From assembly GCA_977030845.1 (NCBI GenBank), contig OZ365111.1, forward strand, positions 6,138,001-6,202,000: a stretch of 64,000 nucleotides of DNA, written 5' to 3'. The stretch is from Fimbriosthenelais zetlandica (Eukaryota). Shown here one piece after another: positions 7,001 through 61,447 of the stretch. Positions within the stretch are counted from its first letter, which is position 1, and every line of letters starts with the position of its first letter. Below the pieces are notes generated by a model, which did not search any database, was not told where the DNA came from, and saw nothing but the letters and a program-made list of their open reading frames with translations. Both the position numbers and the translations under genes were made by a program.

Positions 7001-8189
7001 CATTTTCTATCCCAATAGTGAAGTTCCAAAACCGAAAAACTTCTAATCTTTGCATAGTATATTTGAATTCATTCTCCTCCACAAGAACCAGTGATTCACT
7101 CCAACCGTCGCCAACAATTTGTGTTGAGTTAAAATACAAATTGTAGGTTAAACATACTTTTATCTTGCGAGGCGCCATAAAAAGGCATTTTGTTAGGCAG
7201 AGTAAACTGTTGGAGAGGTTCACAATGTTGGTGTTGGTTATCATAAGGGACCTGTGAGTGTGGATAGAGTGGAGAGTGAGCGTTCTCACATAGTGATAAG
7301 CTATGTCTATATTACAACCATCTCCCTTCATACCTCATGCTTTCTCACACGGGATCCAAAGTTCAGACTTGTTATCCCCCCCCCCCACCACCCACCCACA
7401 CCTCCAGCCCACTTTCCCACTACACCTCCACCCCAGCTGCCCCTCCCCTTCCCAACCCCTCTCCATACACCCCCCCCCCCCGCCCCCCCGCCTCCCCCAA
7501 AACACCATGCCCCGCGTTGACAGCCGCAGGGCTTGATCTACCCTGTTTTCATAATGTAGCACACATTTTCCATAAAAAGAAAAAAAAAACAATTTTTGAA
7601 AAAAATCCTCCAATCATTTTCTTTGCTTCAGGGAATCAATGTGTATTTAATTACGTTCATATGTTATACCAATGAAGGCTCGGGCTCAAAATAAAATATA
7701 AAATTGAGATATATAGAGCTATTGCCAAGCTTATAAGCTACCCTAACCCGGTGAGTTTAATCGCGACTTTACGGTAAATAGCTCGGCCTAGACTTTGGCT
7801 GATCTCATAAATAAGCGAGATGATTTAATGCTGATACATGCAGTGTTAAAAAACACCGCCAGCCCGTGGCATCATTTCTAAAAGGCTAAAGCCATCATGG
7901 AATGAAAACTTACAAATAAATAACATGACAGTCCTCCAGTCAGGACACGTTGAATGATTCATGAAAATAATTATTTTCATTTTATCTGACAACATTATGT
8001 GGGTCGATCCTCCGATAGTATATATCCTAGGATATATAAAACCAAGTTTTACGAAAGTAAATGTAAAACTAACTGCAGCTCTGTAGAGATGAGGTAATTG
8101 GCCCCGAGGCCACTGTTATAGCATTAATATAATTAGTTGTGGCCCGAGACCGCACAAGGGACGGTTTAATAAAAAAAATATGCGAGATC

Positions 8190-14276: not shown

Positions 14277-15405
14277 TAAAAGAACCTCGAGCCAGACAGC
14301 CCACATGGTGACAGCTTCCCCGGCTATATATCACATATCATCTCTCCCCTTGGAGTGCCTCCTCACTATCCGTATTGTAAGGCTAAACAGTCTGTCACGC
14401 CCACCTCCTCTTGTGTGTTTTTTACACTCAAAGTCCACAGTCACCAGTATCTGCTCAGAGAAGGAAATTATATGTGAGCAGAGAGACTACACTGATGTGA
14501 ATAAGCTAGAAAATCCCCTGCTTTCCACAAGATTAAAAAAAGATGCTGCTATGTACCATATAATATGGATCCATAGAAAATATTGGAAATATTATTCAGA
14601 CCCGTATCTCCATTCAACCTTATGGTAATTTACTATATTGCAAGTAAATTATATGTCTTGAGCTTACAAGCAAAAAGGGCCCCATTCTGTGCTTTGATAT
14701 TTTATGTGGTCTCTGCTCCTGGCAATTAAAATCAACTGCCTAGAAGCAATATAATATCCTCAGAAAGTGAATATAATATCCTCAGAAAATGAATTTTATT
14801 TTAAACAGAATAGTATATATGTCAGAATGAATTTAACAAAGTTCCCTTGTTTGAACATTACAAACACCTCATGCACACATATCAGTCGGATCACTCTCCA
14901 TCCGTGAAGATAACCTTTGATTTGCCTGTTTGTTCAGCTAGTATGAATGCAGCCATAAGGACATGCCTGCAAACAGATGAGAGATAGGACCTGAGTGCAT
15001 TGTCCCATACAAGTACTGATAGCATCTGATAAATAGGCATCTATAGAGATAAAAGCCCTCCGACCATTTGTACTATATATTAATATTTCTACTGATGTTC
15101 CTCTTGGGCCATTAATAATATTGTAGTATGTGTATATATGGTTGCTTTCTGATAATATAGTCTGCCACCTTGAATAGGAATCCTATCCTAGCAATGCCCA
15201 CTATTTGTATTATTAAATATACATGTCTATTGACTACCAGTTTCATTGTATTAAATGCTCAATATTATCCAAACTGGCATGCATTGTATATGCTACACTG
15301 GCATATACGTAAACTAATTTAAATTAAAATGTTTTTTTTCCATTACCTTCCATATCACTTGGAGAACGTTGGAGAAATTGATATTTCATATTTAGTTTAA
15401 ATAGC

Positions 15406-15526
15406 TGGTCTCTCAGCATAAATGTGGCTGGGTGAGGTATCATGTCATGTGCCTGTGCAGCATGATACATCAGTGAGACAACTGAACACCATAGGACTCA
15501 CTGTCACAAATAAGCCATGATATAAC
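15406..15526 (+). mobile_element. SINE core fragment, same family
   Basis: aatgtggctgggtgaggtatcatgtcatgtgcctg...cagtgag...catgatataac. Confidence 0.7.
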
Positions 15527-18500
15527 ATATAGCTAAAGAGTTTCATGCTAGTCTATCTAACTAGATGCTGGAGCCAGAAGAACAAGAACCCAGGTGGTTG
15601 TGTGTAAAGGCATGAGTAATTCACCGTCAAGTTATCGGCTGGGGCCCAAGCCCTAGTCGTACCCATCCCCTTCTTGTTACCAACTCACTCACAACCTCTC
15701 CCCCACCCCCACCCCCACCATCTCCCCACTCTCCCACTGCAATAAACACAGAAACCCCTTCAGCTATCTGCTTCTCACCACAGCAGGCCTGTAAACGAGA
15801 TTGTTTTGTTTCTTTTCACATAGCAAGAGGAGTGAGGCTTTGCAACTCTAAGCATAGACGTGGGCGTATCAGAATAGACCAAGCCCTCAGCTATGCCATC
15901 CATGTACCCTATGTGTTGTACTCTCCACACGGGTACACGGCACACTATTAATTGCCAACAGACCTTCTTGTTCATTCTCAAGTTACTTGTAAGAGAAAAA
16001 AAGAAGAAAGAAAAAAAGAAGAATTAACCCCCAGTCCACGGATTTTGAAATCCCAATTGATCGGTTTTTAAAATATCCCATACAAAAACTGAATATCAGG
16101 GTTCTACCCGACGTGAGAATTGAAGTTATGGAACCATGTCAAAGTTTATGGAAAGCCAACAATGAACATTATGCCAACATTATCCAAAGTTATGGGAAAT
16201 CAACATTAGCATCAGCAGTGGCTACTTTCAACGCTATGTTAAAAGAGTGGGCAAAAAAACCGAAATAATGACTCCTTATTTTTTCACAACGCCCCATAAA
16301 ACATGAAAATGAAAATTGCCATGTTTGGTTTTGAAAAGAAATGGAAAGGTTATGGAATTGAATTTTCTGTGGAAACTCTGAATTAATTCACACTAAGTGC
16401 ACACTATTTGCTGTTTGCTTGGTTTGTGGGTGGTGTCACATTTTGGAGTGGTCAGAAAGTTCTGATGTTTCTTGTGACGGTTGGCCTAGATGGAAAAGTG
16501 GTGATATGGAATGGATCCAAATGGTCTGTCATGAAGGGGTCAGGGACCCAGTACTAGGTCCCTAGTTATCTAGTTATTTAGCTCACGTATTCATGCCAGG
16601 TTACTTTACTTTAAGTGCCACTAGTTTTAAGATAACATTAATCTTAAAATACAGATTATGGTTAATCTAAATAAACTTTGTTTTACTTAAGAGAAGAAAC
16701 CCCCAAAATTTAAAAATCCAATCTTCAAGTCAGCCTGTCTCTGATTTTTGACTAATAAAACTTGAAAAAAACCCATAGGCCCTATCAATTGATTTGCAAC
16801 TACTAAACTTTCTTCCCCAGCACTGTTTTCTTCGACTTTCTTCCCTGACAATACTTTCAACAGCCACTGTTGTTCAACCTACTTTGATATATATGTAGAA
16901 GAAAAAATAATTAAAAAAACTTTCTGTTTTATTGAGAAGCTTGTTTTATATCATACATATGATCCAGATCATGTCTGGGCTGGGACCCTTGGCTCTGTGT
17001 GGAGGTAGCTGAGCATTGTAGCCGGGGGCCTAAAGAAAACCTTATGTGATAATGATAAAAAGCTTACAATAATATGATGCCTGCTGCATACACCATTGTA
17101 TTGGTGAAGCTATGTGAGACAGAGGGATCTGGGACTTTGTACCGTATGCACACATTTAAACACTGGTTCAAAATGAAAGCCAGGGGTTGGGGATCGCCAG
17201 AAGTTTCGTGTTTAAAGTTTCAATATTGACCCCCCCCCCCCAACAAAAAAAAATATATATATCCAATCAAATTATCAAAACAAACAAATTTTACAAAAAC
17301 AGAACCGTCTCAATTGAAAGGGGTACTTGGAAAATAGGACATCGAGTGGTAATTGGAAACAATACGGTAAATAACAATCTAATGTCAGGAACACACTTCC
17401 ATAAAGTTGCATTATTTATTAGCCGGCCCTCACTATATTACCATGGCATAGATGGTGTATACAGTATCCTGGATCATATTTGTTAGCCGTCAGAAATGGA
17501 AAGTGTAACCGCCATGTAATGGTGGAAAAAGAGACAAATCATGTACTGTAATATGATAGCTCTATATATATTAGGGAATTCATAATTGCTGTCAGATTTT
17601 TCCTGAGGTTTATGCGTGGGTTGCTTTGTGGCTTTTAGAGTTGGTTTGGGTACTTATGCACTTGGCGTTATTTTTAAAATCTATGACAAATATATATATA
17701 TTTTCAAAAATAATATTTAAATTTGTGAACAACATAGAAAGAGAGCGAGATCCCCACTTCAATGCACGTGTAGGCAATTAGCTCTGGTATAAAGAAAAGA
17801 AATGAATATTACAAAACAAATCCCCCCAGACCCCCGAAAACACAAGTACCGTAGTTGAAAAATAACCCCTAAGCAAACTTCCCTCCAAACTTGACTAAAA
17901 AATAAGTCAAAAAAAAATCCAAAGATGACTTAATTGAATAGGGAAAAAGTCCAATTGAATGATATCAGTGGATTGTTTTCAGTGCATTGGATGAGATGGG
18001 AATGTTAGCATGTGGCCTTCCATCTGGGTTATAGGGTGGGGGGCTGGTGGATGGACTAGATACACTGTACACATATAGCTTATGTTGCAGCCACTCCCTC
18101 CCTGACCTCAGCATTGGGATCACCAACCTTGGTCCTTGCCCCATCTCTCCCCCTTCTCTCTTTCCTCCTACATACACAGCTCTCAGTCTACCACATTATA
18201 CTATGGAACTTATCAACATTTTTTTAACCCCTATTCTATCCATACGCCCAGCATCAATGGCAGGGTGTGTGTGCCAGTGGGCTATTATATATTATACACA
18301 TACATAAATGCCCCTGATTTTAGATGTACATGCACATCAAAACCCCCCAACATTGGTGTCAAGGGTTATGTCAATGGGATTTATGTAAGGGCAAAGTTAG
18401 GTTGGGCTTTTCATTTGCCCACATATACAGTTTATAGTCAGAACATTTCATAGGCCACATATCAATTTTCTAGCCACTCTTGGAGGGATGAAAGTTTGCT

Positions 18501-24100: not shown

Positions 24101-27100
24101 TCAAGAAATTCGGTAATATTCAGAAAATAAAAATGTCTTCCTATTTATGTTTTTCAGGCCCGACCTTATCCGCTATGACAAACTTTCCAAGGCTAACCCT
24201 ACCTACAATCTTAACAATGCTTTCAACGTGGCCGAAGAAAAACTCGGTCTTACACGCTTCCTTGATGCTGAGGGTGAGTACAATTTCCCAATATTTAAGA
24301 AGTTTTTCATTCACAAATTTATAACTTTAAGTTTTCAAGAAGGTGAATCATGAAATTCTTCCTGACAAAAATGTATGTATTTTAACAATTTAGCGATACA
24401 ATATTACACTCATTGTCAATTTTTGGGGGGAATTTTTAAAAGTGGGATTTTACATATTTTGTCACTTTCTGGGAAATTTCAAAAGTGGGTTTTTAAAAAT
24501 TAACGAGTAGGAAAAAATGATTTGTAATTTTTCGCCTTTCAGATGTAGCTTAAAAATTGAACAAGTACTTGTTGGGATTTTAAGAATTGAACGAGTAGGC
24601 TTAAAAAGTAAAGTAGGTCTACAATATTTTATATTATTTTAAACTTTCAGATGTGGCTGTTGACTACCCGGATGAGAAGTCCATCATGACATACGTCGTG
24701 ACATACTATCACTTCTTCTCTAAGATGAAGGCTGAATCTGTACAGGGTCGCCGTGTCGGAAAGGTACGCATCTTTCCCTTTTTACTTCTTCACCAAGTGA
24801 AAAATGAGAAAAAAAAGATGGGGGAAAAAATCCATCATTATCAAATCCCCGTATACTTCCAAAATCTTCCCAAAATTAACTAAGCATAAAAACGCGAGTT
24901 TTGTCTCTTTGAGCGAAAAAAATTCAGTTTTGATTTTAAAATAAAGTAGATTGTTTTAATGAAGTTTAAAGGTTTTTTTTTCTCTAAATTGATATTAATT
25001 CATGGGGTTTTTTGGGCGTCCAGGTGAAATAATGGATTTATTGTATTAAAAAAAAACTAGGCACTTCCAAAAATATACAAATTTATTCAGCTGATGACGA
25101 ATATGCAAGTTCAAACAAATGAAACATTCGGGGAGAAAAGCATGGCGTCAGTTTATATTTCTCAAAATTAAAAAAAAAATGTTTTATGTAGGTCATCAAC
25201 CAGTGCCTGGAGAATGATCAAATGATCAATGACTATGAAACCCTCACCTCTGACCTGCTCGAGTGGATCAAGAACACCATCGAGGTCCTGAACGAGAGGA
25301 ACTTCGCTAACTCCCTCACTGGTGTACAGCAACAACTCACAACATTCAACACTTACCGCACAGTAGAAAAACCTCCCAAGTAAGTCGCCATTAGATCATT
25401 CTGAGATCATTTGTTGACAAAGATGCGATATATCAGCCAGTTGTAAGGCTGTCTTCTTATGCAAAAGGCCCCAACCTGAAAAATGATGGTTTGAAATATA
25501 TGTAGAGGATAGAACTTGGAATTGTGTCAATTGACAGTCTATTTAAAGTCGGTGTATTTTATTTAGTAAAACGAAATTTATAAAATGATGGATTTACATA
25601 ATATATCCTTAATGCGTCTTCAATTTGGCTGCAGTAAAGATTTTACTGCATATTCGACAAGGCAATTAACGTTACTGATCATGATGTTAAAATTTCTTTT
25701 TTCTATAATTGAAAAATCGAACAAAAAATTGAAAAATATTAATAAGTTTCTTTTTCATTTGAAAAATGTTCATAACTTGTACCTTTATTGTTGACAAAGT
25801 GTCAAACTAAAACACCACCCCTCCACTTTTTTGCAGATTTGTAGAGAAAGGTAACTTAGAAGTGCTTCTCTTTACGATACAATCCAAAATGCGGGCCAAC
25901 AACCAGAAGCCCTACCTGCCCAAGGAGACCCAGCTCATCTCCGACATTAACCGGGCCTGGGACCGCCTGGAGAAAGCGGAGCACGAGCGGGAGCTGGCCC
26001 TGCGCGAGGAGCTCATCAGACAGGAGAAACTGGAGCAACTCGCCTCCAGATTCGACCGTAAAGCCGGCATGCGTGAGACGTGGCTCGGTGAGAACCAGCG
26101 GCTGGTGTCGCAGGATAATTTCGGTTACGATTTAGCCGCGGTGGAAGCCGCCACCAAAAAACATGAAGCTATCGAGACAGATATTAACGCTTATGAAGAG
26201 AGAGTACAGGCGGTAGTGTCGGTAGCTCATGAATTAGAACAGGAGAATTATCACGATATAGAGAGGATCACCCTGAGGAAGGATAATGTCCTCCGACTGT
26301 GGAACTACCTGCTGGAACTGCTGCGTGCACGTCGCATGAGGCTCGAACTCTCGCTGGCTCTACAAAAAATATTTCAAGAAATGCTCTATATACTTGACTG
26401 GATGGATGAAATCAAAGTAAGTCAAAGAATTTAAAAAATAATAATTTTATTTTGTTATTCCTCTGAGGAAAGTACATCATAGTTTGAAAATAAATGATAA
26501 AAAGGCAAAAAATATGTTAATGATCAATAAAATTTTGGGATTTTTGCAGTTGTAACATCAAAGGATTGATGAACATGCAAAAAACACATTATTTCAGAGA
26601 TTATTTTAGCTATTGTCACAAATATTGTCCTTTCTTTTGTTTTGATCTTGTACATTTCTCGGGTCATAAATTCGGTACATAAATAAATTTCAAAATAACA
26701 AAACAAACCATAAAACTACATTTAAACTTAGAATGATTTAGAAAAATCAATGTACCCTACTCATTATAAACTACTCCTAATCACAAGTACAAACTGCCGA
26801 CAATATATTTTATTTAGTGATTTCTTGAAAATTGCAAGGTGTAAGTAGGTAATTTTGTGACTTTTAGGCAAGACTCCTGTCTGAAGACTATGGTAAACAT
26901 CTGATGGGTGTAGAGGACCTACTACAGAAACATTCGCTACTCGAGGCTGACATCAACGTCGTCGGAGAGCGGGTCCGCAGCGTCAACTCACAGGCTGACA
27001 AGTTTGTGGAGGGAGAATTTGCTGAGGCGGGCGGTAAGTGTTATTTTTTTTTTTTTTTTTATTTTTTTTTTTTTTTTAATATCATATATCTTTCCGCCCC

Positions 27101-50300: not shown

Positions 50301-53300
50301 GTGAAATTTGTTTAAAAAAATCTTTATACAAAAATTATTTTGTATACAGGATTTAAATTTATGTGTGAAATTTGTTTTAAAAAATCTTTATACAAAAAGT
50401 GTGAAATTTTTTTTTTCCTTCAGGTTCTTCAACCTGGTACGAGACCTTCAGTTGTGGATGAGTGACATCCAGCGCCAGATGAGCACACAGGAGAAGCCGA
50501 GAGACGTGTCCGGCGTCGAGCTGCTCATGAACAACCACCAAAGTCTGAAGGCAGAGATAGACGCCCGCGAGGAGAACTTTGCCATCTGTCTAAATCTCGG
50601 CCGCGACTTGCTTCACCGCAAGCACTACAGACACCCAGAGGTGAGTGGACAGTTTTATTGTTAAGCCAGGAACACACTAATCCGATTCTCCAAACCGTCG
50701 CCAACCGATACCCGATTTCTAATGGCATCTAAAGATTGAAATTTTGTCAGTGGTTAACGTTACCTATGTGTAAAGGACTTCAAATTACAAGCATTTGGTG
50801 TGAATAGAAATATACTTTCTGACAGCTATCGGATGGCGCCGGATAGAAAATCGGATTAGTGTGTTCCATGATTTGTGTCAACCTAAATACGAGGGCTATA
50901 TGAAGTCGAAAAAGTAACAATTATTTGAATAATGGACCTGAAAACTCCAATTTCTTTCTGGGAATGATAATTTACATACACTACTGTTCATCGGGTGGGT
51001 AAATAAAATGATATATTGATGTCTATTTTACAAGAAAAACCCATGGAAATGATACACTACTGTTCATCAGGTGGTTAAAATCATCGGTGATAGAGCCCCT
51101 TTAAGTTAACTGAACCAGGAATACTAATTGAATTATCTATTCAACTGTTTATTCCAACTATATTTCAGGTGAGAGACAAATTAATTGGACTGGGAACACA
51201 GAGAGGAGAGATGATGGAACATTGGGATGGATGCTGGGAGTACCTCCAACTTAGTAAGTATCCAATTAAGAAATAAAAGAATCCTATACACTAAAATGAT
51301 TATCATTAAATAAAATATTAACATTTAAAAAACTAGTTCAGTAGACAAAAGATCAGCAATTAGTATTAAACTGTGTTACGTTTATGTCTTGCAATTAACA
51401 CCGGAGATTGACAACAAATGGTAACTAACTGAAATCTAATGCAAACCTTTCAACATTGCAGTATTGGAGGTCTACCAATTTGCCAGAGACGCATCCGTGG
51501 CAGAGGCTTGGCTTGCAGCACATGAGCCATACTTACAAAGTAGAGATTTTGGCGTAAGTTCTCTTTTCTTGGTTTTTGAACTGTACTAAATTGAAGATCT
51601 CGGATGCATTAATGCCTAAATTTACAGTTTCAAAATACATATATATATATATAAATAATAGGATTACTTATAGTATGTCCCAAGATTAGTCCTACATTTG
51701 AAAATTGAATTTCAGGATTCACTAGATGCAGTGGAAGCACTCATCAAAAAACACGAAGCCTTTGAGAAGTCTGCTGCCACCCAAGAGGAAAGATTCGCCG
51801 CTCTTGAGCGGCTAACGACGGTAAGTCTTAAACGTGTATTCATTCAAGTTTCCCACAGTCGTGGAGAAACCTGAAAAATGGAATGGAAATATATCAAAAA
51901 GTTGTTTAAAATGGTCACGGAAAATTTGTAGAATTTATTTTTGTAAAATGTTAAATTTTTATATTTGAAATTGATTGTATAAATCTTCAAAAAATGTTCT
52001 ACTACTTTAACCAAGAATGATCTCTCTCCTTTCAGTTTGAGATAAAAGACCGAGAAAAGAGGAAAGAAGAAGAGTTTCGACGAGAACATCCAGACGCGCC
52101 TTACCCTCAAAAACAAAGTTATGTTCAGAAATATACAGAAGAGTTCATACCACCACCAGAACCAGAGTAAGTACATTGAGTATCATTTCTTAAAAAATAT
52201 ATAGCCCGTTAATCTTAACTTCCCGAGGACTTCTCCTTCTACCCATGTTCTATATTACATTCAATATGAGGGAAAATCACTGGAAACTCGAGTTGACCAC
52301 ATTAAATGACTGTTGTCATTTCAATTTTCAGAACGGAAATTACAATCAGGTAACCTTGTCATGGAAGCCCAGGTTTTTGATTGAGATTCGTTCAAATGAA
52401 TAATAATATTTCTATGAACCCATTGAATACCCCCAAGATCATCAGCGCATGATATTTTTACTTGACCTCAGCACTGCACTGGAATGCAGATAGTATTTAC
52501 CATTTCCAGCCGAGATAATATATTATTTTGATTTGAAAATCTGAGATTTACTATAATAATACAATTAGGTATTTTAATCCGATTTAAATCCTAGTTTTGC
52601 ACTTTTTGCAATGCCATCTGAGATCGACCCTTCGAATGAATTCAGCTTCCCAATTATCTTTACTTTGCGACCACCGTTCCCCAATTCTTTTAGAACCCCA
52701 AACCAGAAAATAGCCACGGTTTTCTATTTAATTTTTATATTGATCCAAGATTTTTAAATTTCACCCCATTTTGTTGATATTTGGACCCCTAAGCATGATG
52801 TTCCTCTTTATTGCCCCGACTACCAATTTTTTGGATGTTTTTTGAAAAACTTTCAATATCCCTTTCCTCATCCATCAATGTTGCTGGTGTTTTCAGACCG
52901 GAACCGGAACCGGAACCAGAACCACAGCAATCGTCACCGGATCGTGACGAGGCTGGAGGAGCCGGCGAACCCGAGTCTGTTATAAATGGAGAGAAAGAAC
53001 ACGAAGACAGTCCCCGAGGAACTGCCGCTGAAGGTAAGAGAGAAACGCGTACCCCCGCTTGGGCGTCTTTAGTTTCTATAGGTGTTGTGGTCCGTCGGCG
53101 AGGGATCCCCAAAAGGTGCTTCCCAATGAAACTGAAGCCCCTGAGATTTTTTTTTGTAACAGGGGAGCTTCTTTGTTTCTCAATCCAGCGAACTTTCTTA
53201 CTCTTAGCCAGTGTCTCTGATTCTTGAGAGAACATGCCCAGCTGGAGTGATTTCCCCTATGTTGTGTAGTCATCTCTGCCCGTGGGGCAGTGAAGCATGC

Positions 53301-56300
53301 TCAGTCGGAATACCTTTGACTATAGGGTAAGCTGATGCATGCCTGCAATTTGCAGATTAAATTATTTTATGCATGTATTGTAAAAACTGGTAATGCCCAA
53401 GAAAGCTCGGCCCAAATCGTAAAAAAAAGCAAGGTTTGTAATTTTAAATACAATTTTTCACGTAGTTGTTTCTTTTAATTTCTGCATGGGTTTATTCATC
53501 AATGTAGTATACAGCACCTTTTCGTTTAGTTTAAAGTGCAGTATTATCGTGCATGATTCTTTAATTTAAGCTATTTGCACTATAAATATAAATGTTAATC
53601 GAATGTTTCTGAAGTACACATTTTTATTAGCATTTATGGTATATCTTTGCATGTTTGTTAACTTTTGTTTTTACTGTTATTCTTGATTGTTGAATGTGAG
53701 TTTGTCTGTGTATGAGATTTAATCTTATAAGTCATCGCCATAAAAACCTTTCAAATTTTAAGATTTTCATATCTGATATTAAGTTTGATATTAAGACTAG
53801 TGTCTATGGACTGAAAAAAAAGTAATTTTTGACGCCTTCTATAAGACAAGTTATTTTAGATCTTTTTGCGTACCATTGAAATAGAGTGTGAATGGCTGAC
53901 AACTATGCAACTTCAAAATCTCATCCAAAGTACTTTTGAAATTCGTTATCTAAAATGAAGTCATTTATAAATCTTCCTGCATATTTTGGACTTAATTACA
54001 ATTTCTGTTCAATTTTGAAACGAAAGCATGTGTTCGTAATTTTCAAAATTAACGAGAGAAAAGTTTTATAACTCATTATGCTTCCAATCGTCACAAATTT
54101 ATTGTATTTAAGTTTTCCTTTAATTAACCCATCCTATATTAGTTGTCTAGTAGTGCCTATTAGCAGTAGTTCTAACCTCGGTGGTGGCGTCCACTTGCAT
54201 TGTTAGTAGCGTTCCCTAGTTGCACTTAATTTTCATCAGACTGCTTCATTCACGAGTGAACATAATCATGGTAAGTGAAGATTAGACTCTTAAACTCTTT
54301 GCCAACTTGTGAACGGATGTCCCCACGGCATCACTCGAAGAAGTTATCATGCATGAGCCAGCGCTCTTTGCCATCTCTCCAAAACTCAGCAATGGAGTTG
54401 TCATGGAACTCTATCAAGACTGTCCTCCTTAAATTCCATGCGTTATGGAGTGCAGTTTGTTTTGGAGAGTGCAAAGGAGTGCAATCATGATCACTATGAA
54501 TGTGATGCCCTGGGCTAGAAACCCCCTGGAGTTTATAACTGTTTTACCAAAGAACACATGATGGCACAGGGTATACTGAAACCCAACCAAACCCACTATA
54601 GTTAGGACTAGACCAAGTGTGAGGAGTGGCGAGAGTGGAAAGTTTGTATAGAAAGTATTAGAGCCAAGTAGTTGAAGCTACAAGTAAGGTTCTTATTATT
54701 ATGATGGTCAGAAGAAGGTCCTACTCCTATGGATATTGATGAGGTACCGTCTGATACTGGGAGGAAGTTCCATGAACCAGACGTACCCGATATCCCGCCT
54801 GAACCTGTGGAGCATATACCACCTCCAGCGATATTACCCGCTACACCACGAACCACAGCGCCACCACCCACTGCCACTACAACTGCCTCTTCTTCTAGCA
54901 AACCCTCCACGGTTAAAGGTGAATACTAACAAAGAAATTAACCAGACGCGATATCGGTCATTCCATCTCAGCCTACTGTTTGCCCACTTAACAAAGCAAG
55001 GGCAAGCGGTATACCTCGAAAATGGTCATTCATTGCAGGGTTCCTAGCCACTCAGGAAATCAGGGAAAAACTGGAGTTTCACATTTACCGGACAGGGAAA
55101 ACTCGGGGAATTTGAGAAAAAAAATGCAAAAATCGGGGTATTTCAACACTGATTTAGAAGGATAATCTTTCGGAGGTTGACGCGTGCCCGCCACTGAAGT
55201 TCAGAGTGCTTCATATGACTACAATATCTGGGAACCCTGCATTGGAAAATGGTCTGTGATGCATGTGGTGGTTGGAAAAAATGCCCTTTGAATCTAGTAG
55301 CCATTGAAAAATGGTCTCTTGATTGAAATAAGTGATCATTGAATGGTGGTCTCTGAAATAAGTGACCATTGAAATAAGGCCTCAATGTGTGGCTGTTTGA
55401 CCACGTCTCTGGACACCCTCCTGAAGTTCCAAATCAAATAAATTGCTGATATGTTTGGCACTAAAAACTATGTTCATATCTATGGCAATTCATTGTATGC
55501 CAAGATGCTTGGCAATTCATTGTATGCTGAGATGGAATGAGCCTGCAAGTGGGATGACTGCAACCGACAGAGAAGGGTATACATCCTGTGTTATGGACTT
55601 TTCTTTTAACATTGCATGCATCTTTCTTTTCTCTGTGATACACTATTCATTTAACTGTTCTCTTATTTGGTATTGTATCTTCTTTTTTCCAATGTCTGTA
55701 TCCTGGTAATCAATATTCATAAAATCCTGGTACTTAAATACGTACGTCCTGACTAGTAGACCTTGGCAAGCAATTTCAGACTGGCTGCCTGTCGACAATA
55801 TTCATTTTCCATCCATTTTCCAACTATATTTTCCATGAATACACCGAAATTCAAAATTGTATTCGCAGAAATATCTCTAAATTCCTGGGGCGTTGCTTGC
55901 TGGGGAAAACTGCCTTTTGACTAAGGTTATCTATCTATAATCAAGCATGACGGTAGCTTTAGACATTTTTAACTGTGCCCAGAAAATGGAACAGTTAATT
56001 CATATTATATATCTCTGTCTCTGCGTATGTTCGACATTAGACATCAATTCCATCGTGTTTTAGACATTTCCCCATTTGTCGATGACTTTGTCCGAGTCTT
56101 TGATGTTTGGCTTTACCTTTAGAAATTATTTTTACTTGTAGAAATTACCAGAGATTTTTCATCTTATTCATATATTATATGGATGATAGTCATATTGTCC
56201 TCGTCCAAGAGTCATCTTTATGTTCCGTATTTGATCTAAATTTCACTGTTGGTTTATCAACGTGCGTAGTTGAACAGTGTATGACATTGGATAAAGAAAA

Positions 56301-59300
56301 AATCTCACTCTCTTAGTAGCGCCTCAAATAATATGAATCTCGCATACTAATCCATTGAACTTATGTTACTCAAACAAGTGGCCATAAGCATGATGATGTT
56401 ATGCCTTGCAACCTTAAACTATTCTAATATTTTATTTGTGACTGACTGATAAAAACTAAGAACAAACCCAGGACTAAAAAAAAGTACTACTATTAGACCA
56501 GGATCAGCACTGCTGAGTTTTCTGTTTGTATAGTTAAAGTCTTAGTTATTCACTCCTTCTGATTGATACGTTTGATTCTCTTTGTGTGTTTGCACTCTGG
56601 TTTGGGGGTGGGACCCTGCGAGCAGTATTTCCGCGGAAAATGCCAAAATCTGATTCCGCTCTAGGTGCTCTGGGTCCCCGATATCGTACCCTAACCTAAC
56701 CCAAAACCCCACACCATTGGGACTCGGAGCACTTGGGGCTGTCCTTATATATTGGGATTGGGTCATTTTATTGTATTATTGTGCATTCCCACTCCGACCT
56801 CCCATGTGCTCGCGGGGCTGCCCACTTGCCAAGGGCAGAGTGCTTTGTGTGTTAAGTTGCGATGATGCCCTTTCTCACTTCACCAGTGGAACGTCCCCGC
56901 ACCCAAGAGACGCCCCGAAAAGCCCAGGCAGAACGCCGCTCAGAACCGAGCACCTCCAAGAGTAAGTAACTCTGCTGGGAAGCAGAAAAAGAACAGCCAC
57001 ATAAGGGAAAGGAGACTCTCAGCACAAAACTCCTTCCATAGCTTTGCTGGGCTTTACGCTGAACTCTTATGTGGTCTAGGGAGGCTCACCAATGATAGGA
57101 AACAAAAAGAAAAAAATCTTAAATCCCCAATCAGTGATTCTTACTACCTATCAATGCTTACTTTCCACGCCTTTTTCATTATTGAATTTATGCTTTTCCA
57201 AGATTACTCACCTTATTTATCAATACGATCTGTATTAAGTTAAATGTTCATTTCAGAATTATGCTATCAATCAGTAACATATATATAAGTTTCCTGAGTA
57301 AATTATTCTAAAATTTGTTATGTACTCAAACATTTATTCATAAAGATTTAAGAACACGACAAAAGTGACTAGATGCACATTAATCATTTTCACAGTGATC
57401 ACCTTGTACACTTTTCAATTCCATTATTAAGTCATTTCTGATAAAAAAAAAATCCCTCATTCCCAAACAATCAACGAGTCACACACACACACTGATATGT
57501 TCAAACTCCATTTAAATTTTCCATTTGACATTATATTATATCTGCATGTTCTGTGTACATATATAGTTTATTTTCATCTTTGCATGGTATAATATTTTTT
57601 TCCTCGACTTCAACCCATGAATGTAGGTGGTCAGAATTGACCCCCCACTCATTTTCTCTCTTTTTCCCCTTCCTGCATGCTCGCTACTAATAGAAATAAA
57701 ACCCCAAACTGGTGGAAGGGTTCCACACAAGGAGGTGTCGGACGATTATGAAAATAATATCGATTGTTTTAATCACCTTTCTGTGTTTAATGTGAGGTTT
57801 GTTTTGTTCTTTTCTCTTGCGTTTGGCAGAAGAGAAACGCTCCAAATCTCCCTTCAAGCGCAGGGCGCGCTCAATGGAACGTGAAGACATAAAACCTGTA
57901 GCCTTGCCCCCAGGTAAAACTCTGCATGGCCTTTGGTGGTCAGTCTGTGCCTTAGGCACAGAGACAGAGTGAGCACTTCGCACTGTTACCTAGAGTGGCA
58001 CCGGCGCTCTCAATATACCTATATACAGCTCTATATATATCACCAGCTCTTCGTTCTAGCCCGGGAATTTTGCATTTTAAAGAAACATCACAATCAATGA
58101 TAGAACATCACAAGTGTGGGATATCCAGTGAAAAATGCCATAACACAAATGTGGTTTATTAAAAACTTCCATAACAAGTCTTGACCATAAGTGTTATAGC
58201 GTATTCCACAAGATTGTCACGTGCGAGTGATATTCTATATTTATAACACAGTGCAGTATACTTCACTCATGTGGCAGAAACCCATGTGTGGGATATGAGG
58301 AAAATATATTATAAGTACATATTTTGCTCGAAATATGAGACCGATACTGACTGTGGAATAAATACTCATGTGTTTTTCACATATATATGGTACATACTTG
58401 ATGTACGTGAAACATGTTTACACGGTGGCAGCGATCTTGGTTGATGGGCTTTGCATATCGCATGGCCAGAAATGTTAATATTTATTTTGAAGACCAAAAA
58501 GCATTTTAGATATTTTAAAGTTATAAAATAAATCATGATTCAGGAGATTATTCTAATGGTTTATCTTTCTGGATCATGCACGGGGTTGACTTGGGACTTA
58601 TGTTCATGTTACTCAGTTTTAGTTATTCATTTGAATCTTGGGTTGATTTTACCCATTTCGCGACGGTCTTTCTCAGTGCGAAAAGGTTAAAGTTTATTAC
58701 AAATTGGGAACTATGGAAAGATGGAGACTGAGCAACATGGACATGTCGGTCTGGGTTGTGATACTGACAAGTAAGGCTGTCTCTGCCTCTGTCACTTCAC
58801 TGGGGATATGGCTAACAATGGATCCAATGTTCTGGAAATATCACCTGTCAACTGTTGGACATTCTCTGCATGAACCCTCGTAACGCACACCTCTCGTAAA
58901 GTAAACATCAATCGCACATTGCTAGTTAGAAAACCATATGGTACCCCTAGGTTTACCAGAGATTTGTACTGTTGAGTAGATCAATAAAGGTACTGTAGAG
59001 GAATAAAATAGTGAAATGATAATGATAAAAAAAAGTCTAAACTTCTAGTTGTTGAGGTTGCCATATGGTATTTAGTGAGCTGTATTCAGCTAGTTATCTA
59101 GACCTGTGGAGATGTGCAATAGGGAGGGTTCATATTTGTCTTGGTCTTCTGGCAATCTTGGTTTGGCGGAAAACTTTATTTTATCTGGGTTAATATTGGC
59201 ATCTTTGTCTTTCCTTGCTCGGGGCTTCATCCCTTCTAAATGCTATGATCACATTTTGATCGCTCATTTGGAAATAAATGATTTTTGATTTGACATTGTT

Positions 59301-61447
59301 CTTCATCCCAGGTGTAATGCCGGAATGGGCTTTTATATTGATGAAATGAACCGGTTATATTGCAATTGATGACCGTTTTAAACTCCCTAGTAAAATATTG
59401 TTGCCATCTCACCTGAAAGATTACACATACATGATATATTTTTGTCACCAAATTGGCAGTAGATTTGTTGATTTGTTTTGACTTACTTTTTTTAATTCAT
59501 TCCTGCCCTTTTTTGCATTTCTTACTTCCTTCGTATATATTTATATCTGTGTTACCGTTTTTTATCCATCACTTTTTCTTATACCATGCTATTTTTATGT
59601 GTTTATTCCTTAATGAATACAATGTAATAATTCCAATGAAAAAGAAACGTCATTCAAATAAGTTACCATTTTGCAAGCATTTGCCATGAAAATCAGCAAC
59701 TTGTAAAGGCCTTCGGTTCAATCTCCTTGTATGTTGTTTATTCGATTAAATTTTTTGTAAGCCGTCTTTAATTTTAATCATCTGTGTTGCTGATTTTGTT
59801 AGGCAAACGAATTTATATTCGCAAACATGCAGATGTCATATTCTATACTATTCCTGCTACAATGGACCAAAACTAATTTGCTCACTCGAGTGCTTCATTT
59901 AACCATTACATGCATAAACCCCAACACAACCTTATGAGAAAAGCTTCTGGAATAAGTGGTATCGGGCAATAAGTTAAGACTTTTTCACAAGTTGTTATCC
60001 TTTGTACTCTGATCTGAGACTAAATGAATCTAATTTGTTTTTTTAGTGCCAGGACAGGATGCGGAGGACCGATTTGAGGGAATACTTAGCCGAAAACACG
60101 AATGGGAGACCACCACAAAGAAAGCTAGTAATCGGTAAGTATCTACCTTCATTGATGATCATGATCATTATGTTCTAGCTTCAGAAGGATTAAGAATACT
60201 ATGCGTGGTTTGCAGTAATATTTTGACTTGCAGAAATCAGTTCTAGAATAACCTATAATTCAAATTACACAGATTCCATATTTCCACATGTGGAAATAGT
60301 CATGAAAAGAGTTCTTTGAAAAAAAATATATATGCTGTTCATTCTTTTTCTTAAATGAAAAGTATTAAAGTACAGTTTTGTTATGGATACTTTTGTATAA
60401 CAATGTGTATGTCATGTAATTTTGGTTTTCTTCCACAGATCGTGGGAAAAACTGTATTGCCTGTTGGAAAATGGCCAGCTTGCTTTCTACAAAGATGCTA
60501 AACACGCTAAATCAGTAAGTATCACATTAAGTTTAGCATGTTCCCCTTCAATATGCCAAAGTAAAATATCTAAGCATTAAAGGTCCCACTTTGAAATGAC
60601 CAGTGAAACGAATTTGTACCTTGCGCTGTGTAACTTTCAATTTATTCTGTCCTCATTCATACAAAACAGGGCCATTTGAATATTTTTCTTTTTGTTTTTC
60701 TCCTTCGGAATTCATGAATTCTCTTCATCTTTCAGGAACCAACTAACTACTTCCATCATGAACCACCAGTGGATATGAATGGTGCATCTTGCGCTATTGC
60801 TTCTAACTACACCAAACGCCCACACGTGTTCCGTCTGAAGCTGGCCACAGGTGGTGAATACCTCTTCCAGGGCAAAGATGAGGTTTGTACTCTACTTATA
60901 TATATATATATATATTTTTTTTTTAATTTGATTTATTTATCCTATATAGCCATTTCATGATGTTTAATCGATTGTTCTCAAAGAAATATTAAAATACTTT
61001 CACTAAGTGGGGCTCTGTGTAGCAATACTGTACCTTCTTGAAATTTGGTGCTTATAATTCATGCAATGTCCTAAGAGAAATATCAAGAGACAAAACATGT
61101 ACCGCTGTATTATATGGGCCTGTGGGACTTTCGAATCATTTAGTAAAAACACATCACATATAATTTACTGTGGTGCTAATGTTTTCTGCAGTTATCCCTT
61201 CATGGCTTCTTTATTTATTTATTTATTAATTTATCTATTTATTTATTAATTTATTTATTAATTAATTTATTCATTTATTTTTTCTTCACAGGAGGAGATG
61301 AACACATGGATCCAGCAGCTGAACGCCCAAGCAGGCGGCGAGGCGGCATCCCCAACGCGAGCACAGACACTTCCCGTAACATCAGGCGAAGGCAAGAAAG
61401 ACGACTCCAAACGACGCAGTTTCTTCACGCTTGGAAAGAAAAAGTAA
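20937..61447 (+). CDS. beta-Spec: Conventional beta-spectrin, spliced and 5'-incomplete: CH2, spectrin repeats SR1-17, linker, PH domain, C-terminal tail (36 core exons, 6516 nt)
   Basis: Exon translations match beta-spectrin hallmarks: [100 protein letters not shown] motif [22 protein letters not shown] and tail [11 protein letters not shown]. No SH3 domain is seen, so it is not beta-heavy. All junctions are GT-AG with consistent phase. Confidence 0.97.
21180..21485. mobile_element. MITE family B with TTA/TTA target duplication
   Basis: About 28-bp TIR ggccacattttttttaattgtttggtt / aaccaaacaattaaaaaaatgtggcc, flanked by TTA on both sides. Confidence 0.8.
22690..23130. repeat. Purine-rich degenerate tandem repeat, unit about 130-150 bp
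   Basis: aaggtttggtgaatgggggatatgagcaggga at 22831 and 22981; ggaatagattggg occurs three times. Confidence 0.8.
24158..24273 (+). CDS. beta-Spec: core exon 2 (CH2: [11 protein letters not shown]...RFLDAE)
   Basis: ttttcag acceptor, G|gtgagt donor, phase 2 to 1. Confidence 0.95.
24651..24763 (+). CDS. beta-Spec: core exon 3 ([11 protein letters not shown]...RRVGK)
   Basis: tttcag acceptor, AAG|gtacgc donor, phase 1 to 0. Confidence 0.95.
25192..25379 (+). CDS. beta-Spec: core exon 4 (SR1: VINQCLEND...EKPPK)
   Basis: tgtag acceptor, AA|gtaagt donor; missed by the ORF track. Confidence 0.95.
25837..26416 (+). CDS. beta-Spec: core exon 5 (SR1-SR3: FVEKGNLEV...WMDEIK)
   Basis: ttgcag acceptor, AAA|gtaagt donor; overlaps ORF 25862..26434. 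Confidence 0.96.
26868..27033 (+). CDS. beta-Spec: core exon 6 (SR3: [11 protein letters not shown]...FAEAG)
   Basis: ttttag acceptor, G|gtaagt donor. Confidence 0.95.
27548..27792 (+). CDS. beta-Spec: core exon 7 (SR3/SR4: YKPCDPQVV...LLNKHK)
   Basis: ctcag acceptor, AAG|gtaatc donor. Confidence 0.95.
28229..28327 (+). CDS. Candidate alternative exon in SR4 ([33 protein letters not shown]), cassette or terminal
   Basis: tgtgtttgtgtag acceptor, 33 open codons in phase 0, CCG|gtaaat donor. Read-through gives VN* with AATAAA at 28339-28344. Confidence 0.55.
28376..28715. repeat. About 180-bp tandem duplication
   Basis: ctgccaccagtata...gggttaattaagccat...ttagattactctaagtc...gacccaaatgt...aatcctaattcaaa occurs twice. 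Confidence 0.85.
29061..29261 (+). CDS. beta-Spec: core exon 8 (SR4: SNEDGMQAR...VDFYQ)
   Basis: ttttcag acceptor, CAG|gtacct donor. Confidence 0.95.
30006..30122 (+). CDS. beta-Spec: core exon 9 (SR5: FFADADDVD...LKKHK)
   Basis: ttcag acceptor, AAG|gtacag donor. Confidence 0.95.
31350..31382 (+). CDS. Candidate 33-nt microexon in SR5 ([11 protein letters not shown])
   Basis: tgtgttttcag acceptor, CCT|gtgagt donor, phase 0-0 like its neighbours, no stop, TGCATG at 31388-31393. Confidence 0.65.
33374..33451 (+). CDS. beta-Spec: core exon 10 (SR5: EVSDELQNY...LGEQ)
   Basis: tttatag acceptor, CAG|gtaaac donor. Confidence 0.93.
33727..33891 (+). CDS. beta-Spec: core exon 11 (SR5/6: DKESPEVLG...WIAEK)
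   Basis: tttcag acceptor, AAG|gtgaga donor. Confidence 0.95.
34135..34368 (+). mobile_element. SINE, 5'-truncated, same family
   Basis: ggcactcagc...gaggacagtactagg...ataatgtgactgggtgag...gaaagcgatgttaaacccaattcaa. Confidence 0.8.
34384..34683 (+). CDS. beta-Spec: core exon 12 (SR6/7: EKLLASMEP...CQETI)
   Basis: ctttccag acceptor, ATT|gtaagt donor. Confidence 0.95.
35013..35141 (+). CDS. beta-Spec: core exon 13 (SR7: SWIREKAKL...AIQAK)
   Basis: ttttcag acceptor, AAA|gtaagt donor. Confidence 0.95.
35380..35496 (+). CDS. beta-Spec: core exon 14 (SR7: LDSLQEEAD...ELKTM)
   Basis: ttacag acceptor, ATG|gtaaga donor. Confidence 0.94.
35909..36184 (+). CDS. beta-Spec: core exon 15 (SR8: LKVRDERLG...MFLRE)
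   Basis: caacag acceptor, GAG|gtaaac donor. Confidence 0.95.
36287..36565. mobile_element. MITE family C (CAGGGTTCCCAG-type TIR)
   Basis: cagggtccccag ... ctgggaaccctg; interior shared with the copies at 49934 and 55036. Confidence 0.8.
36850..36939 (+). CDS. beta-Spec: core exon 16 (SR8: RLKALDDGW...SLNLQ)
   Basis: taacag acceptor, CAG|gtttgt donor. Confidence 0.94.
37260..37337 (+). CDS. beta-Spec: core exon 17 (SR9: VFLRDAKQA...KEEVP)
   Basis: tttcag acceptor, CCT|gtaagt donor. Confidence 0.94.
38292..38315 (+). CDS. Candidate 24-nt microexon in the SR9 A-B loop (TTPGLDKQ)
   Basis: Long pyrimidine tract ending tgttgcacag, CAG|gtaaaa donor, phase 0-0, open frame. Confidence 0.7.
41718..41890 (+). 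CDS. beta-Spec: core exon 18 (SR9: HSLEAAENI...QLADR)
   Basis: ctctgcag acceptor, AG|gtttgt donor. Confidence 0.95.
43458..43695 (+). CDS. beta-Spec: core exon 19 (SR9/10: RNQNRQRAY...SKLIE)
   Basis: gtgcag acceptor, GAG|gtaggt donor. Confidence 0.95.
45010..45195 (+). repeat. Degenerate (CCAT)n microsatellite
   Basis: Direct reading; ends about 30 nt before the acceptor at 45226. Confidence 0.9.
45227..45490 (+). CDS. beta-Spec: core exon 20 (SR10/11: EGEELLRQK...VQKQN)
   Basis: atccag acceptor, AAT|gtaagt donor. Confidence 0.95.
46089..46607 (+). CDS. beta-Spec: core exon 21 (SR11/12: ILESQLKIK...EVAQQ)
   Basis: tatcag acceptor, CAG|gtgagc donor. Confidence 0.96.
47075..47283 (+). CDS. 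beta-Spec: core exon 22 (SR13: [12 protein letters not shown]...EGHPD)
   Basis: ctctgcag acceptor, AG|gtaact donor; missed by the ORF track. Confidence 0.95.
47456..47662. mobile_element. Degenerate element related to family C by its end sequence
   Basis: Right end ccgcaggaaccctg, remnant left end tgcggtc, repeated gtcttaaa interior. Confidence 0.45.
47998..48202 (+). CDS. beta-Spec: core exon 23 (SR13/14: AQVAIKQSQ...YEHVT)
   Basis: ctttcag acceptor, ACT|gtgagt donor. Confidence 0.95.
48644..48907 (+). CDS. beta-Spec: core exon 24 (SR14/15, ankyrin-binding region: MLRDRFKEF...LDRIY)
   Basis: ccacag acceptor, TAT|gtgagt donor. Confidence 0.96.
49256..49366 (+). CDS. beta-Spec: core exon 25 (SR15: EKQHTIPEE...TLGSQ)
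   Basis: ttgcag acceptor, CAA|gtaagt donor. Confidence 0.95.
49390..49630 (+). mobile_element. SINE, 5'-truncated, same family
   Basis: ggcactcag...gaggacagtacttgg...ggataatgtaccgggtgaggtatc...cactataaaaga. Confidence 0.75.
49756..49922 (+). CDS. beta-Spec: core exon 26 (SR15: VQQVQEDAS...SDLYR)
   Basis: ttgcag acceptor, AG|gtcagc donor. Confidence 0.95.
49934..50088. mobile_element. MITE family C, internally deleted, 5-bp TSD CTTTT
   Basis: ctttt|cacgattcccag...ctgggaaccctg|ctttt. Confidence 0.8.
50424..50640 (+). CDS. beta-Spec: core exon 27 (SR16: FFNLVRDLQ...YRHPE)
   Basis: ccttcag acceptor, GAG|gtgagt donor. Confidence 0.95.
50663..50873. mobile_element. MITE with about 45-bp imperfect TIRs, left end similar to family A (aagccagg)
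   Basis: ggaacacactaatccgatt...ccgat versus atcgg...aatcggattagtgtgttcc. Confidence 0.7.
51169..51253 (+). CDS. beta-Spec: core exon 28 (SR16: VRDKLIGLG...WEYLQL)
   Basis: tttcag acceptor, A|gtaagt donor, phase 0 to 1. Confidence 0.9.
51462..51553 (+). CDS. beta-Spec: core exon 29 (SR17, tetramerisation site: [11 protein letters not shown]...SRDFG)
   Basis: ttgcag acceptor, GGC|gtaagt donor. Confidence 0.95.
51716..51820 (+). CDS. beta-Spec: core exon 30 (SR17: DSLDAVEAL...ERLTT)
   Basis: tttcag acceptor, ACG|gtaagt donor. Confidence 0.95.
52036..52166 (+). CDS. beta-Spec: core exon 31 (FEIKDREKR...IPPPEP)
   Basis: cctttcag acceptor, GA|gtaagt donor, phase 0 to 2. Confidence 0.9.
52332..52349 (+). 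CDS. Candidate 18-nt microexon (E-TEITI-R)
   Basis: caattttcag acceptor, CAG|gtaacc donor, phase 2-2 like its neighbours, open frame. Confidence 0.6.
52897..53033 (+). CDS. beta-Spec: core exon 32 (linker: [12 protein letters not shown]...GTAAE)
   Basis: ttttcag acceptor, G|gtaaga donor, phase 2 to 1. Confidence 0.88.
53270..53326 (+). CDS. Candidate stop-containing exon ([16 protein letters not shown]), PH-less isoform or poison exon
   Basis: ttgtgtag acceptor, AGG|gtaagc donor, 57 nt. In phase 1 it reads 16 residues, then TGA CTA TAG. Five TGCATG follow within 330 nt. Confidence 0.5.
53336..53653 (+). promoter_or_regulatory. Cluster of five TGCATG (Rbfox-type) intronic splicing elements
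   Basis: TGCATG at 53336, 53370, 53483, 53550 and 53648. Confidence 0.6.
54220..54270 (+). CDS. Candidate 51-nt phase 1-1 cassette ([17 protein letters not shown]), with a second acceptor at 54240 giving DCFIHE*
   Basis: ttccctag and ttttcatcag acceptors share the strong ATG|gtaagt donor. Confidence 0.45.
54712..54918 (+). CDS. beta-Spec: Linker cassette exon, Pro/Thr-rich ([13 protein letters not shown]...SKPSTVK)
   Basis: 207 nt, phase 1-1, open frame, ggtcag acceptor (CAGAAGAAG tandem), AAG|gtgaat donor, coding-like composition. Confidence 0.7.
55036..55239. mobile_element. MITE family C, 5-bp TSD CATTG
   Basis: cattg|cagggttcctag...ctgggaaccctg|cattg. Confidence 0.82.
55245..55385. repeat. 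Short degenerate tandem repeat (ttgaaa..tggtctct / gaaataagtga.catt)
   Basis: Direct reading. Confidence 0.6.
56887..56961 (+). CDS. beta-Spec: Linker cassette exon ([25 protein letters not shown])
   Basis: 75 nt, phase 1-1, cttcaccag acceptor, A|gtaagt donor. Confidence 0.75.
57830..57913 (+). CDS. beta-Spec: Linker cassette exon ([27 protein letters not shown])
   Basis: 84 nt, phase 1-1, long pyrimidine tract ending ggcag, CAG|gtaaaa donor. Confidence 0.8.
60047..60134 (+). CDS. beta-Spec: core exon 33 (PH start: [19 protein letters not shown]...KASNR)
   Basis: ttttag acceptor, CG|gtaagt donor, phase 1 to 2. Confidence 0.94.
60439..60514 (+). CDS. beta-Spec: core exon 34 (PH: SWEKLYCLL...KHAKS)
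   Basis: ccacag acceptor, TCA|gtaagt donor. Confidence 0.94.
60736..60882 (+). CDS. beta-Spec: core exon 35 (PH: EPTNYFHHE...QGKDE)
   Basis: tttcag acceptor, GAG|gtttgt donor. Confidence 0.95.
61292..61447 (+). CDS. beta-Spec: core exon 36, last coding exon ([10 protein letters not shown]...[11 protein letters not shown])
   Basis: ttcacag acceptor, TAA at 61445-61447, conserved beta-spectrin tail. Confidence 0.95.
   Translation, partial: EEMNTWIQQLNAQAGGEAASPTRAQTLPVTSGEGKKDDSKRRSFFTLGKKK

Follow-up and report, generated by a model that had tools for sequence, protein, structure and literature searches.

A strong 5′ splice site next to a TGCATG cluster may close a stop-carrying alternative exon ahead of the PH domain in an annelid beta-spectrin gene

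The plus strand of a 64,000-nucleotide (nt) stretch of the Fimbriosthenelais zetlandica genome (contig OZ365111.1, positions 6,138,001 to 6,202,000; hereafter the window, in whose numbering all positions are given) carries a conventional beta-spectrin gene, and we consider here a short segment of the intron that follows its linker exon D. We put at roughly 0.5 the probability that donor 53327 is the end of a real alternative exon that introduces a premature stop and is accompanied by Rbfox-type motifs; this exon has two possible 5′ borders. From the sequence we infer the following course of events. The 5′ splice site at 53326/53327 would end an alternative exon, and an Rbfox-type factor acting at the five UGCAUG motifs downstream of it would raise inclusion of that exon in nerve or muscle cells. 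Inclusion through an acceptor ahead of 53163, the stronger of two, or ahead of 53270 would bring in a stop ahead of the coding cassettes F, G, and H and of the PH domain, so that the product would be either a beta-spectrin with the actin-binding domain and all 17 repeats but no PH, or a transcript whose premature stop makes it liable to decay. The features referred to are collected in Table 1.

The 27 donors and 27 acceptors of the beta-spectrin gene were mapped via protein alignments, and splice sites were scored with position weight matrices (PWMs) built from these sites of the gene itself. On this scale the donor at 53327, described as strong in the initial annotation of this stretch, outscores 21 of the 27 real donors of the gene. 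The five TGCATG motifs that had been noted just past it are present at +10, +44, +157, +224, and +322, with none on the minus strand there. When the whole window was simulated 2000 times with a second-order Markov model, five such motifs in 320 nt never occurred and the maximum was four, reached once; the cluster is not a product of chance. It is the only significant UGCAUG cluster of the window, and donor 53327 sits 10 nt before it. Among the 26 gene donors other than that of exon D, none has a TGCATG within 400 nt downstream, and the two motifs found within that distance of the exon D donor are the first two of this same cluster. The offset of +10 recurs after coding cassette H, which is alternatively spliced in relatives. 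Donors of this strength occur near their background rate in the gene, and it is the adjacency of donor and cluster that carries the argument for an exon: at a background of about 7 chance donors of at least 9.0 per 40 kb, the 50 nt that precede the cluster should contain about 0.01 of them, by an estimate that was made post hoc.

In-silico splicing was then used to follow the frame. Exon D ends in GGA ACT GCC GCT GAA G/GTAAGA at 53033, that is, in GTAAE plus one G, and the reading of the 57-nt candidate exon, here called exon E and preceded by TGTTGTGTAG, uses this carried-over G. The reading runs into a TGA at 53317-53319, followed by CTA, a TAG at 53323-53325, and G/GTAAGC; the peptide after GTAAE and the second in-frame stop two codons on are exactly as first annotated. 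The upstream border is less clear. The acceptor at 53269, a TAG, scores level with the lowest of the 27 real acceptors. A second acceptor, nine T followed by GTAACAG, lies before 53163, 107 nt upstream of 53270, and would give a 164-nt form with the same donor and a different tail. Because the acceptor at 53163 is much stronger than that at 53270 and the donor is shared, the tail ending in E-Y-L is the less likely of the two. Thus the frame, the stops, and the donor of the exon as originally drawn all stand, whereas its acceptor is the weakest part and has a stronger rival.

The consequence of inclusion is largely the same for both forms. For any exon that ends at 53326, the stop precedes both the linker cassettes and the PH exons and lies at TGA 53317 in the 57-nt form or at 53225 in the 164-nt form, with at least four exon junctions still downstream and the normal stop at 61445. 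As spliced in silico, the inclusion frame stops short of PH, with the actin-binding domain and repeats 1-17 intact. Base composition follows the same border: the fraction of guanine plus cytosine (GC) goes from 0.58 in exon D to 0.48 between D and E, is 0.53 in E, and drops to 0.29 in the next 400 nt, such that the exon-like block ends exactly at donor 53327.

Several other explanations of this segment were discarded. An origin from a repeat or mobile element was rejected, as the candidate stretch is single-copy in the genome. A structured RNA in the GC-rich block was not favoured either: an Rfam scan of the block matched no family, and the fold z-score is only -2. Recursive splicing was rejected since neither exon start rebuilds a donor at its junction with exon D. 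An acceptor at 53241 would yield an 85-nt frameshifting exon, and the only open frame of exon E needs a phase-2 entry, which is offered only by exon C, upstream of D; both were rejected.

The most serious rival, to which we give an appreciable probability that falls short of even, is that acceptor and donor form a chance decoy that is not spliced, and that the TGCATG cluster regulates cassettes F to H, aids intron definition, or is functionless. The following points favour this rival or otherwise weigh against a real exon. Over the gene span, the antisense strand has seven donors scoring at least 9.0, and the sense strand has six without a known exon, including 53695 and 54270. These two, AAT/GTGAGT with a score of 9.0 and ATG/GTAAGT with a score of 9.7, are equally strong donors within the same intron between D and F, and neither has an in-frame coding exon upstream; decoys or additional non-coding exons could account for them. 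Since such donors are near the background rate, the strength of donor 53327 by itself proves little. To this are added the weakness of the acceptor at 53269, the post hoc nature of the adjacency estimate, and the lack of an exon E homologue in the two related loci described below. A Pfam Fox-1_C scan of the genome returned no match, although the controls were likewise silent. A stop exon with strong signals should moreover be selected against in an essential gene; a fly transgene devoid of PH is mostly unable to rescue (PMC2064573). Speaking against a decoy, the significant cluster starts 10 nt past donor 53327, over 1 kb separates it from cassette F downstream, a long distance for a silencer acting from upstream, and the GC boundary coincides with the donor. 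As a separate observation, the donor at 54270 has a TGCATG 80 nt downstream.

Conservation of exon E was compared in two annelid-like loci, L002 and L003, which show 72-78% nt identity in the flanking exons; two others, L004 and L006, end before exon D, and L007-L009 end right after the query exon. In the neighbouring exon, P0001, the closest relative on record, is about 90% identical at the amino-acid level. L002 and L003 both contain exons C and D together with the KSPF cassette, and L003 contains the PH exons as well. A nucleotide search and a scan of every AG in phase 1 found no exon E homologue in either locus, and the comparison of peptide against stop as the conserved element, which had been proposed as a check, found neither conserved in L002 and L003. 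Shortly past exon D, each locus carries a short candidate exon of its own that is open in phase 1, of 66 nt in L002 and 42 nt in L003. Four GCATG lie within 230 nt after the exon D donor of L002, and one TGCATG lies at +130 in L003. In relatives, this linker is made up of short phase-1 cassettes that directly follow exon D, and a short cassette with Rbfox-type motifs in this position may be a shared architecture. A resemblance of the exon E peptide to VIDAPVVVKR, with which the L002 cassette starts, was rejected as homology, as the BLOSUM62 score of about 16 is below the 17-26 reached by chance acceptors. No match to the 3′ end of exon D was found in a scan of metagenome contigs. In one of its introns (14570-17010), the gastropod-like beta-spectrin locus L006 holds a tandem array in which a 132-nt unit recurs about 18 times, with all three forward frames open.

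We also surveyed 120 listed beta-spectrins for models without PH. Among these, Aplysia californica isoform X4 (a RefSeq model, P0410) is PH-less and ends in ...DGWLLHLL. Its tail (REREEEVQRLSKDGWLLHLL, followed by the stop) arises where the donor of the KSPF cassette is read through into the intron, and it forms one continuous block at 68494-68700 of L005. The models from Lingula and Strigamia also lack PH and look incomplete.

The initial annotation had proposed either a PH-less isoform or a poison exon. The stop geometry ahead of PH, the cluster, and the existence of PH-less models elsewhere agree with this pair of outcomes, while the exact 57-nt exon does not come through as well. That a dedicated Rbfox-flanked stop cassette makes a stable PH-less annelid isoform in nerve or muscle, independently of the vertebrate route, is unlikely. 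Slightly more doubtful still is the specific form in which the 57-nt cassette 53270-53326 yields a stable PH-less beta-spectrin that ends in ...SEYL and serves as a PDZ ligand. Its frame and stops are as described, a TAG/T acceptor is in use at the constitutive PH exon 1 (60046/60047), and the PH-less Aplysia model provides a counterpart. The end -E-Y-L is also compatible with the loose class III PDZ pattern X-[DE]-X-hydrophobic. On the other hand, its acceptor is at the bottom of the real set with a far better one 107 nt upstream, its peptide is not conserved, short C-terminal motifs of the E-Y-L kind are common by chance, and a stop with at least four later exon junctions is a typical substrate for decay. 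The suggested PDZ-binding end has no support: it fits only the loose class III pattern, on a tail that is not conserved in the relatives and would exist only with the weak acceptor. Nothing points to autoregulation, the role that had been suggested for a poison exon here.

A single long exon, 52897-53326, in which the exon D donor is skipped for the distal donor 53327 or the transcript ends via the ATTAAA at 53356, is very unlikely. Reading through the exon D donor gives a tail ...LLLASVSDS over 64 codons to the same stop. Exon-like GC runs unbroken from exon D to 53326, the frame is open for these 64 codons beyond the exon D donor, the ATTAAA follows donor 53327 by 30 nt, and Aplysia X4 is a precedent for the read-through of a cassette donor. 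In the predicted fold the exon D donor region 53034-53045 (GGUAAGAGAG) pairs with 53189-53200 (CUUUCUUACU), about 155 nt downstream, through 10 pairs of which 2 are G-U; this stem could mask the proximal exon D donor, although the z-score of the whole region, -2, is weak. However, the exon D donor is itself strong (AAG/GTAAGA), the read-through frame is short in the relatives (25 codons in L002 and 7 in L003), 64 open codons at 50% GC are only mildly unusual, and 3 of the 5 TGCATG motifs lie beyond the proposed polyadenylation (poly(A)) site. An alternative exon that ends at donor 53327, with its start at 53163 or 53270, is the reading that we prefer.

Table 1. Positions in the window of the candidate exon, its splice sites and motifs, and the neighbouring linker and PH exons (a slash marks an exon-intron border)
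Feature	Position	Strand	Remarks
Candidate exon E, 57 nt	53270-53326	+	phase 1 to phase 1; in-silico splicing to exon D
Weak acceptor of the initial annotation, ATTTCCCCTATGTTGTGTAG/	53250-53269	+	PWM 1.6
Stronger acceptor, TTTTTTTTTGTAACAG/	53148-53162	+	exon start 53163; PWM 8.8, above the median of the 27 real acceptors
Longer candidate-exon form, 164 nt	53163-53326	+	phase-1 stop 53225-53227
Donor GTAAGC	53327-53332	+	context AGG/GTAAGC; PWM 9.7
TGCATG cluster, Rbfox-type motif, n = 5	53336, 53370, 53483, 53550, 53648 (span 53336-53653)	+ only	
ATTAAA, possible poly(A) signal	53356-53361	+	30 nt past donor 53327; would permit a terminal exon
Exon C	52036-52166	+	after repeat 17
Exon D, constitutive, PEPEPE...GTAAE linker	52897-53033	+	phase 2 in, phase 1 out; donor AAG/GTAAGA
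Coding cassette F (EEGPTPMD...STVK)	54712-54918	+	phase 1 to phase 1; next possible partner of donor 53327
Coding cassette G, 75 nt	56887-56961	+	phase 1 to phase 1
Coding cassette H (KSPF)	57830-57913	+	TGCATG at +10 (57923)
PH exon 1	60047-60134	+	phase-1 acceptor TTTTTTAG/TG; PH runs to stop 61445-61447

Mapping of the gene within the window placed its repeat exons between about 20910 and 51838 and its four PH-domain exons at 60047-61447. The nearest full-length proteins found, which are 70-76% identical, comprise one from a Logan transcript and those from Owenia, Lingula, and molluscs, and the linker of the Logan-transcript protein resembles the linkers of the annelid loci. A search of representative proteins yielded a ranking of multi-repeat proteins without a close orthologue. 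Homologues of exon D occur in L002 and L003 and in mollusc and annelid proteins. Cassette G has as its counterpart a homologous 66-nt cassette in L002 at 7798-7863 (VATSAPSHQKAAIEKRKSEPPK), and both end in A/GTAAGT. Annelids, nemerteans, and molluscs all conserve the KSPF cassette H, whose presence varies among mollusc RefSeq isoforms; in the window, three TGCATG lie upstream of it (57543, 57581, and 57674). Elsewhere in the gene, donors at 25379, 33376, and 35141, each scoring at least 9.7, close what are probably ordinary constitutive exons that the protein chain skipped, the query gaps there spanning residues 288-324, 783-801, and 1012-1047. Two donors of microexon candidates, at 52349 (18 nt, 52332-52349) and 31382 (33 nt, from 31350), score at least 8.0 on the donor matrix of the gene.

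The PH domain helps to bring beta-spectrin to membranes. If donor 53327 does close an exon used as proposed, a regulated switch that takes away PH, or reduces the mRNA through decay, in Rbfox-expressing cells would mean that invertebrates, too, tune the membrane attachment of spectrin by splicing, and one exon with five motifs would offer a simple experimental handle. If the exon is unused, the locus would be an example of how a strong donor beside a motif cluster can mislead. In C. elegans, PH is kept in both unc-70 isoforms (PMC2174563), and in the fly rescue by a transgene that lacks PH mostly fails (PMC2064573); neither of these worm and fly beta-spectrin papers mentions a PH-less isoform.

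In vertebrate beta-spectrins, PH is confined to the 'long' isoforms (PMC3249148, a review), in agreement with the statement of the initial annotation that short vertebrate isoforms lack it. The vertebrate betaI-Sigma1 and betaII-Sigma2 resemble the product proposed here in that PH is absent and a brief alternative tail closes the protein soon after repeat 17; they differ in that they are demonstrated at the RNA and protein level, whereas the present candidate is predicted, and the tails are unrelated. The vertebrate short isoforms are made via alternative 3′ end processing or 3′ exons and are not known to use an internal stop cassette. Aplysia X4 is closer in kind, as it is lophotrochozoan and PH-less with a short hydrophobic tail inside the same linker, but its tail follows the equivalent of cassette H and not exon D, has no sequence similarity to the candidate, and is not a separate exon. 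Rbfox-activated cassettes, including those that carry stops, share with the candidate a short exon, (U)GCAUG repeats over about 300 nt downstream, an in-frame stop, and later junctions; known poison exons are, however, usually conserved, and exon E is not detectably so at the distances compared. The linker cassettes of molluscs (Mytilus, Ostrea, and Saccostrea in RefSeq) are likewise short, lie directly after the PEPEPE exon, and are variably combined, and cassettes F, G, and H of the window match them in phase 1; these are coding, whereas candidate exon E carries stops. Taken together, the candidate, if real, belongs to two known kinds, the Rbfox-flanked stop cassettes and the short beta-spectrins.

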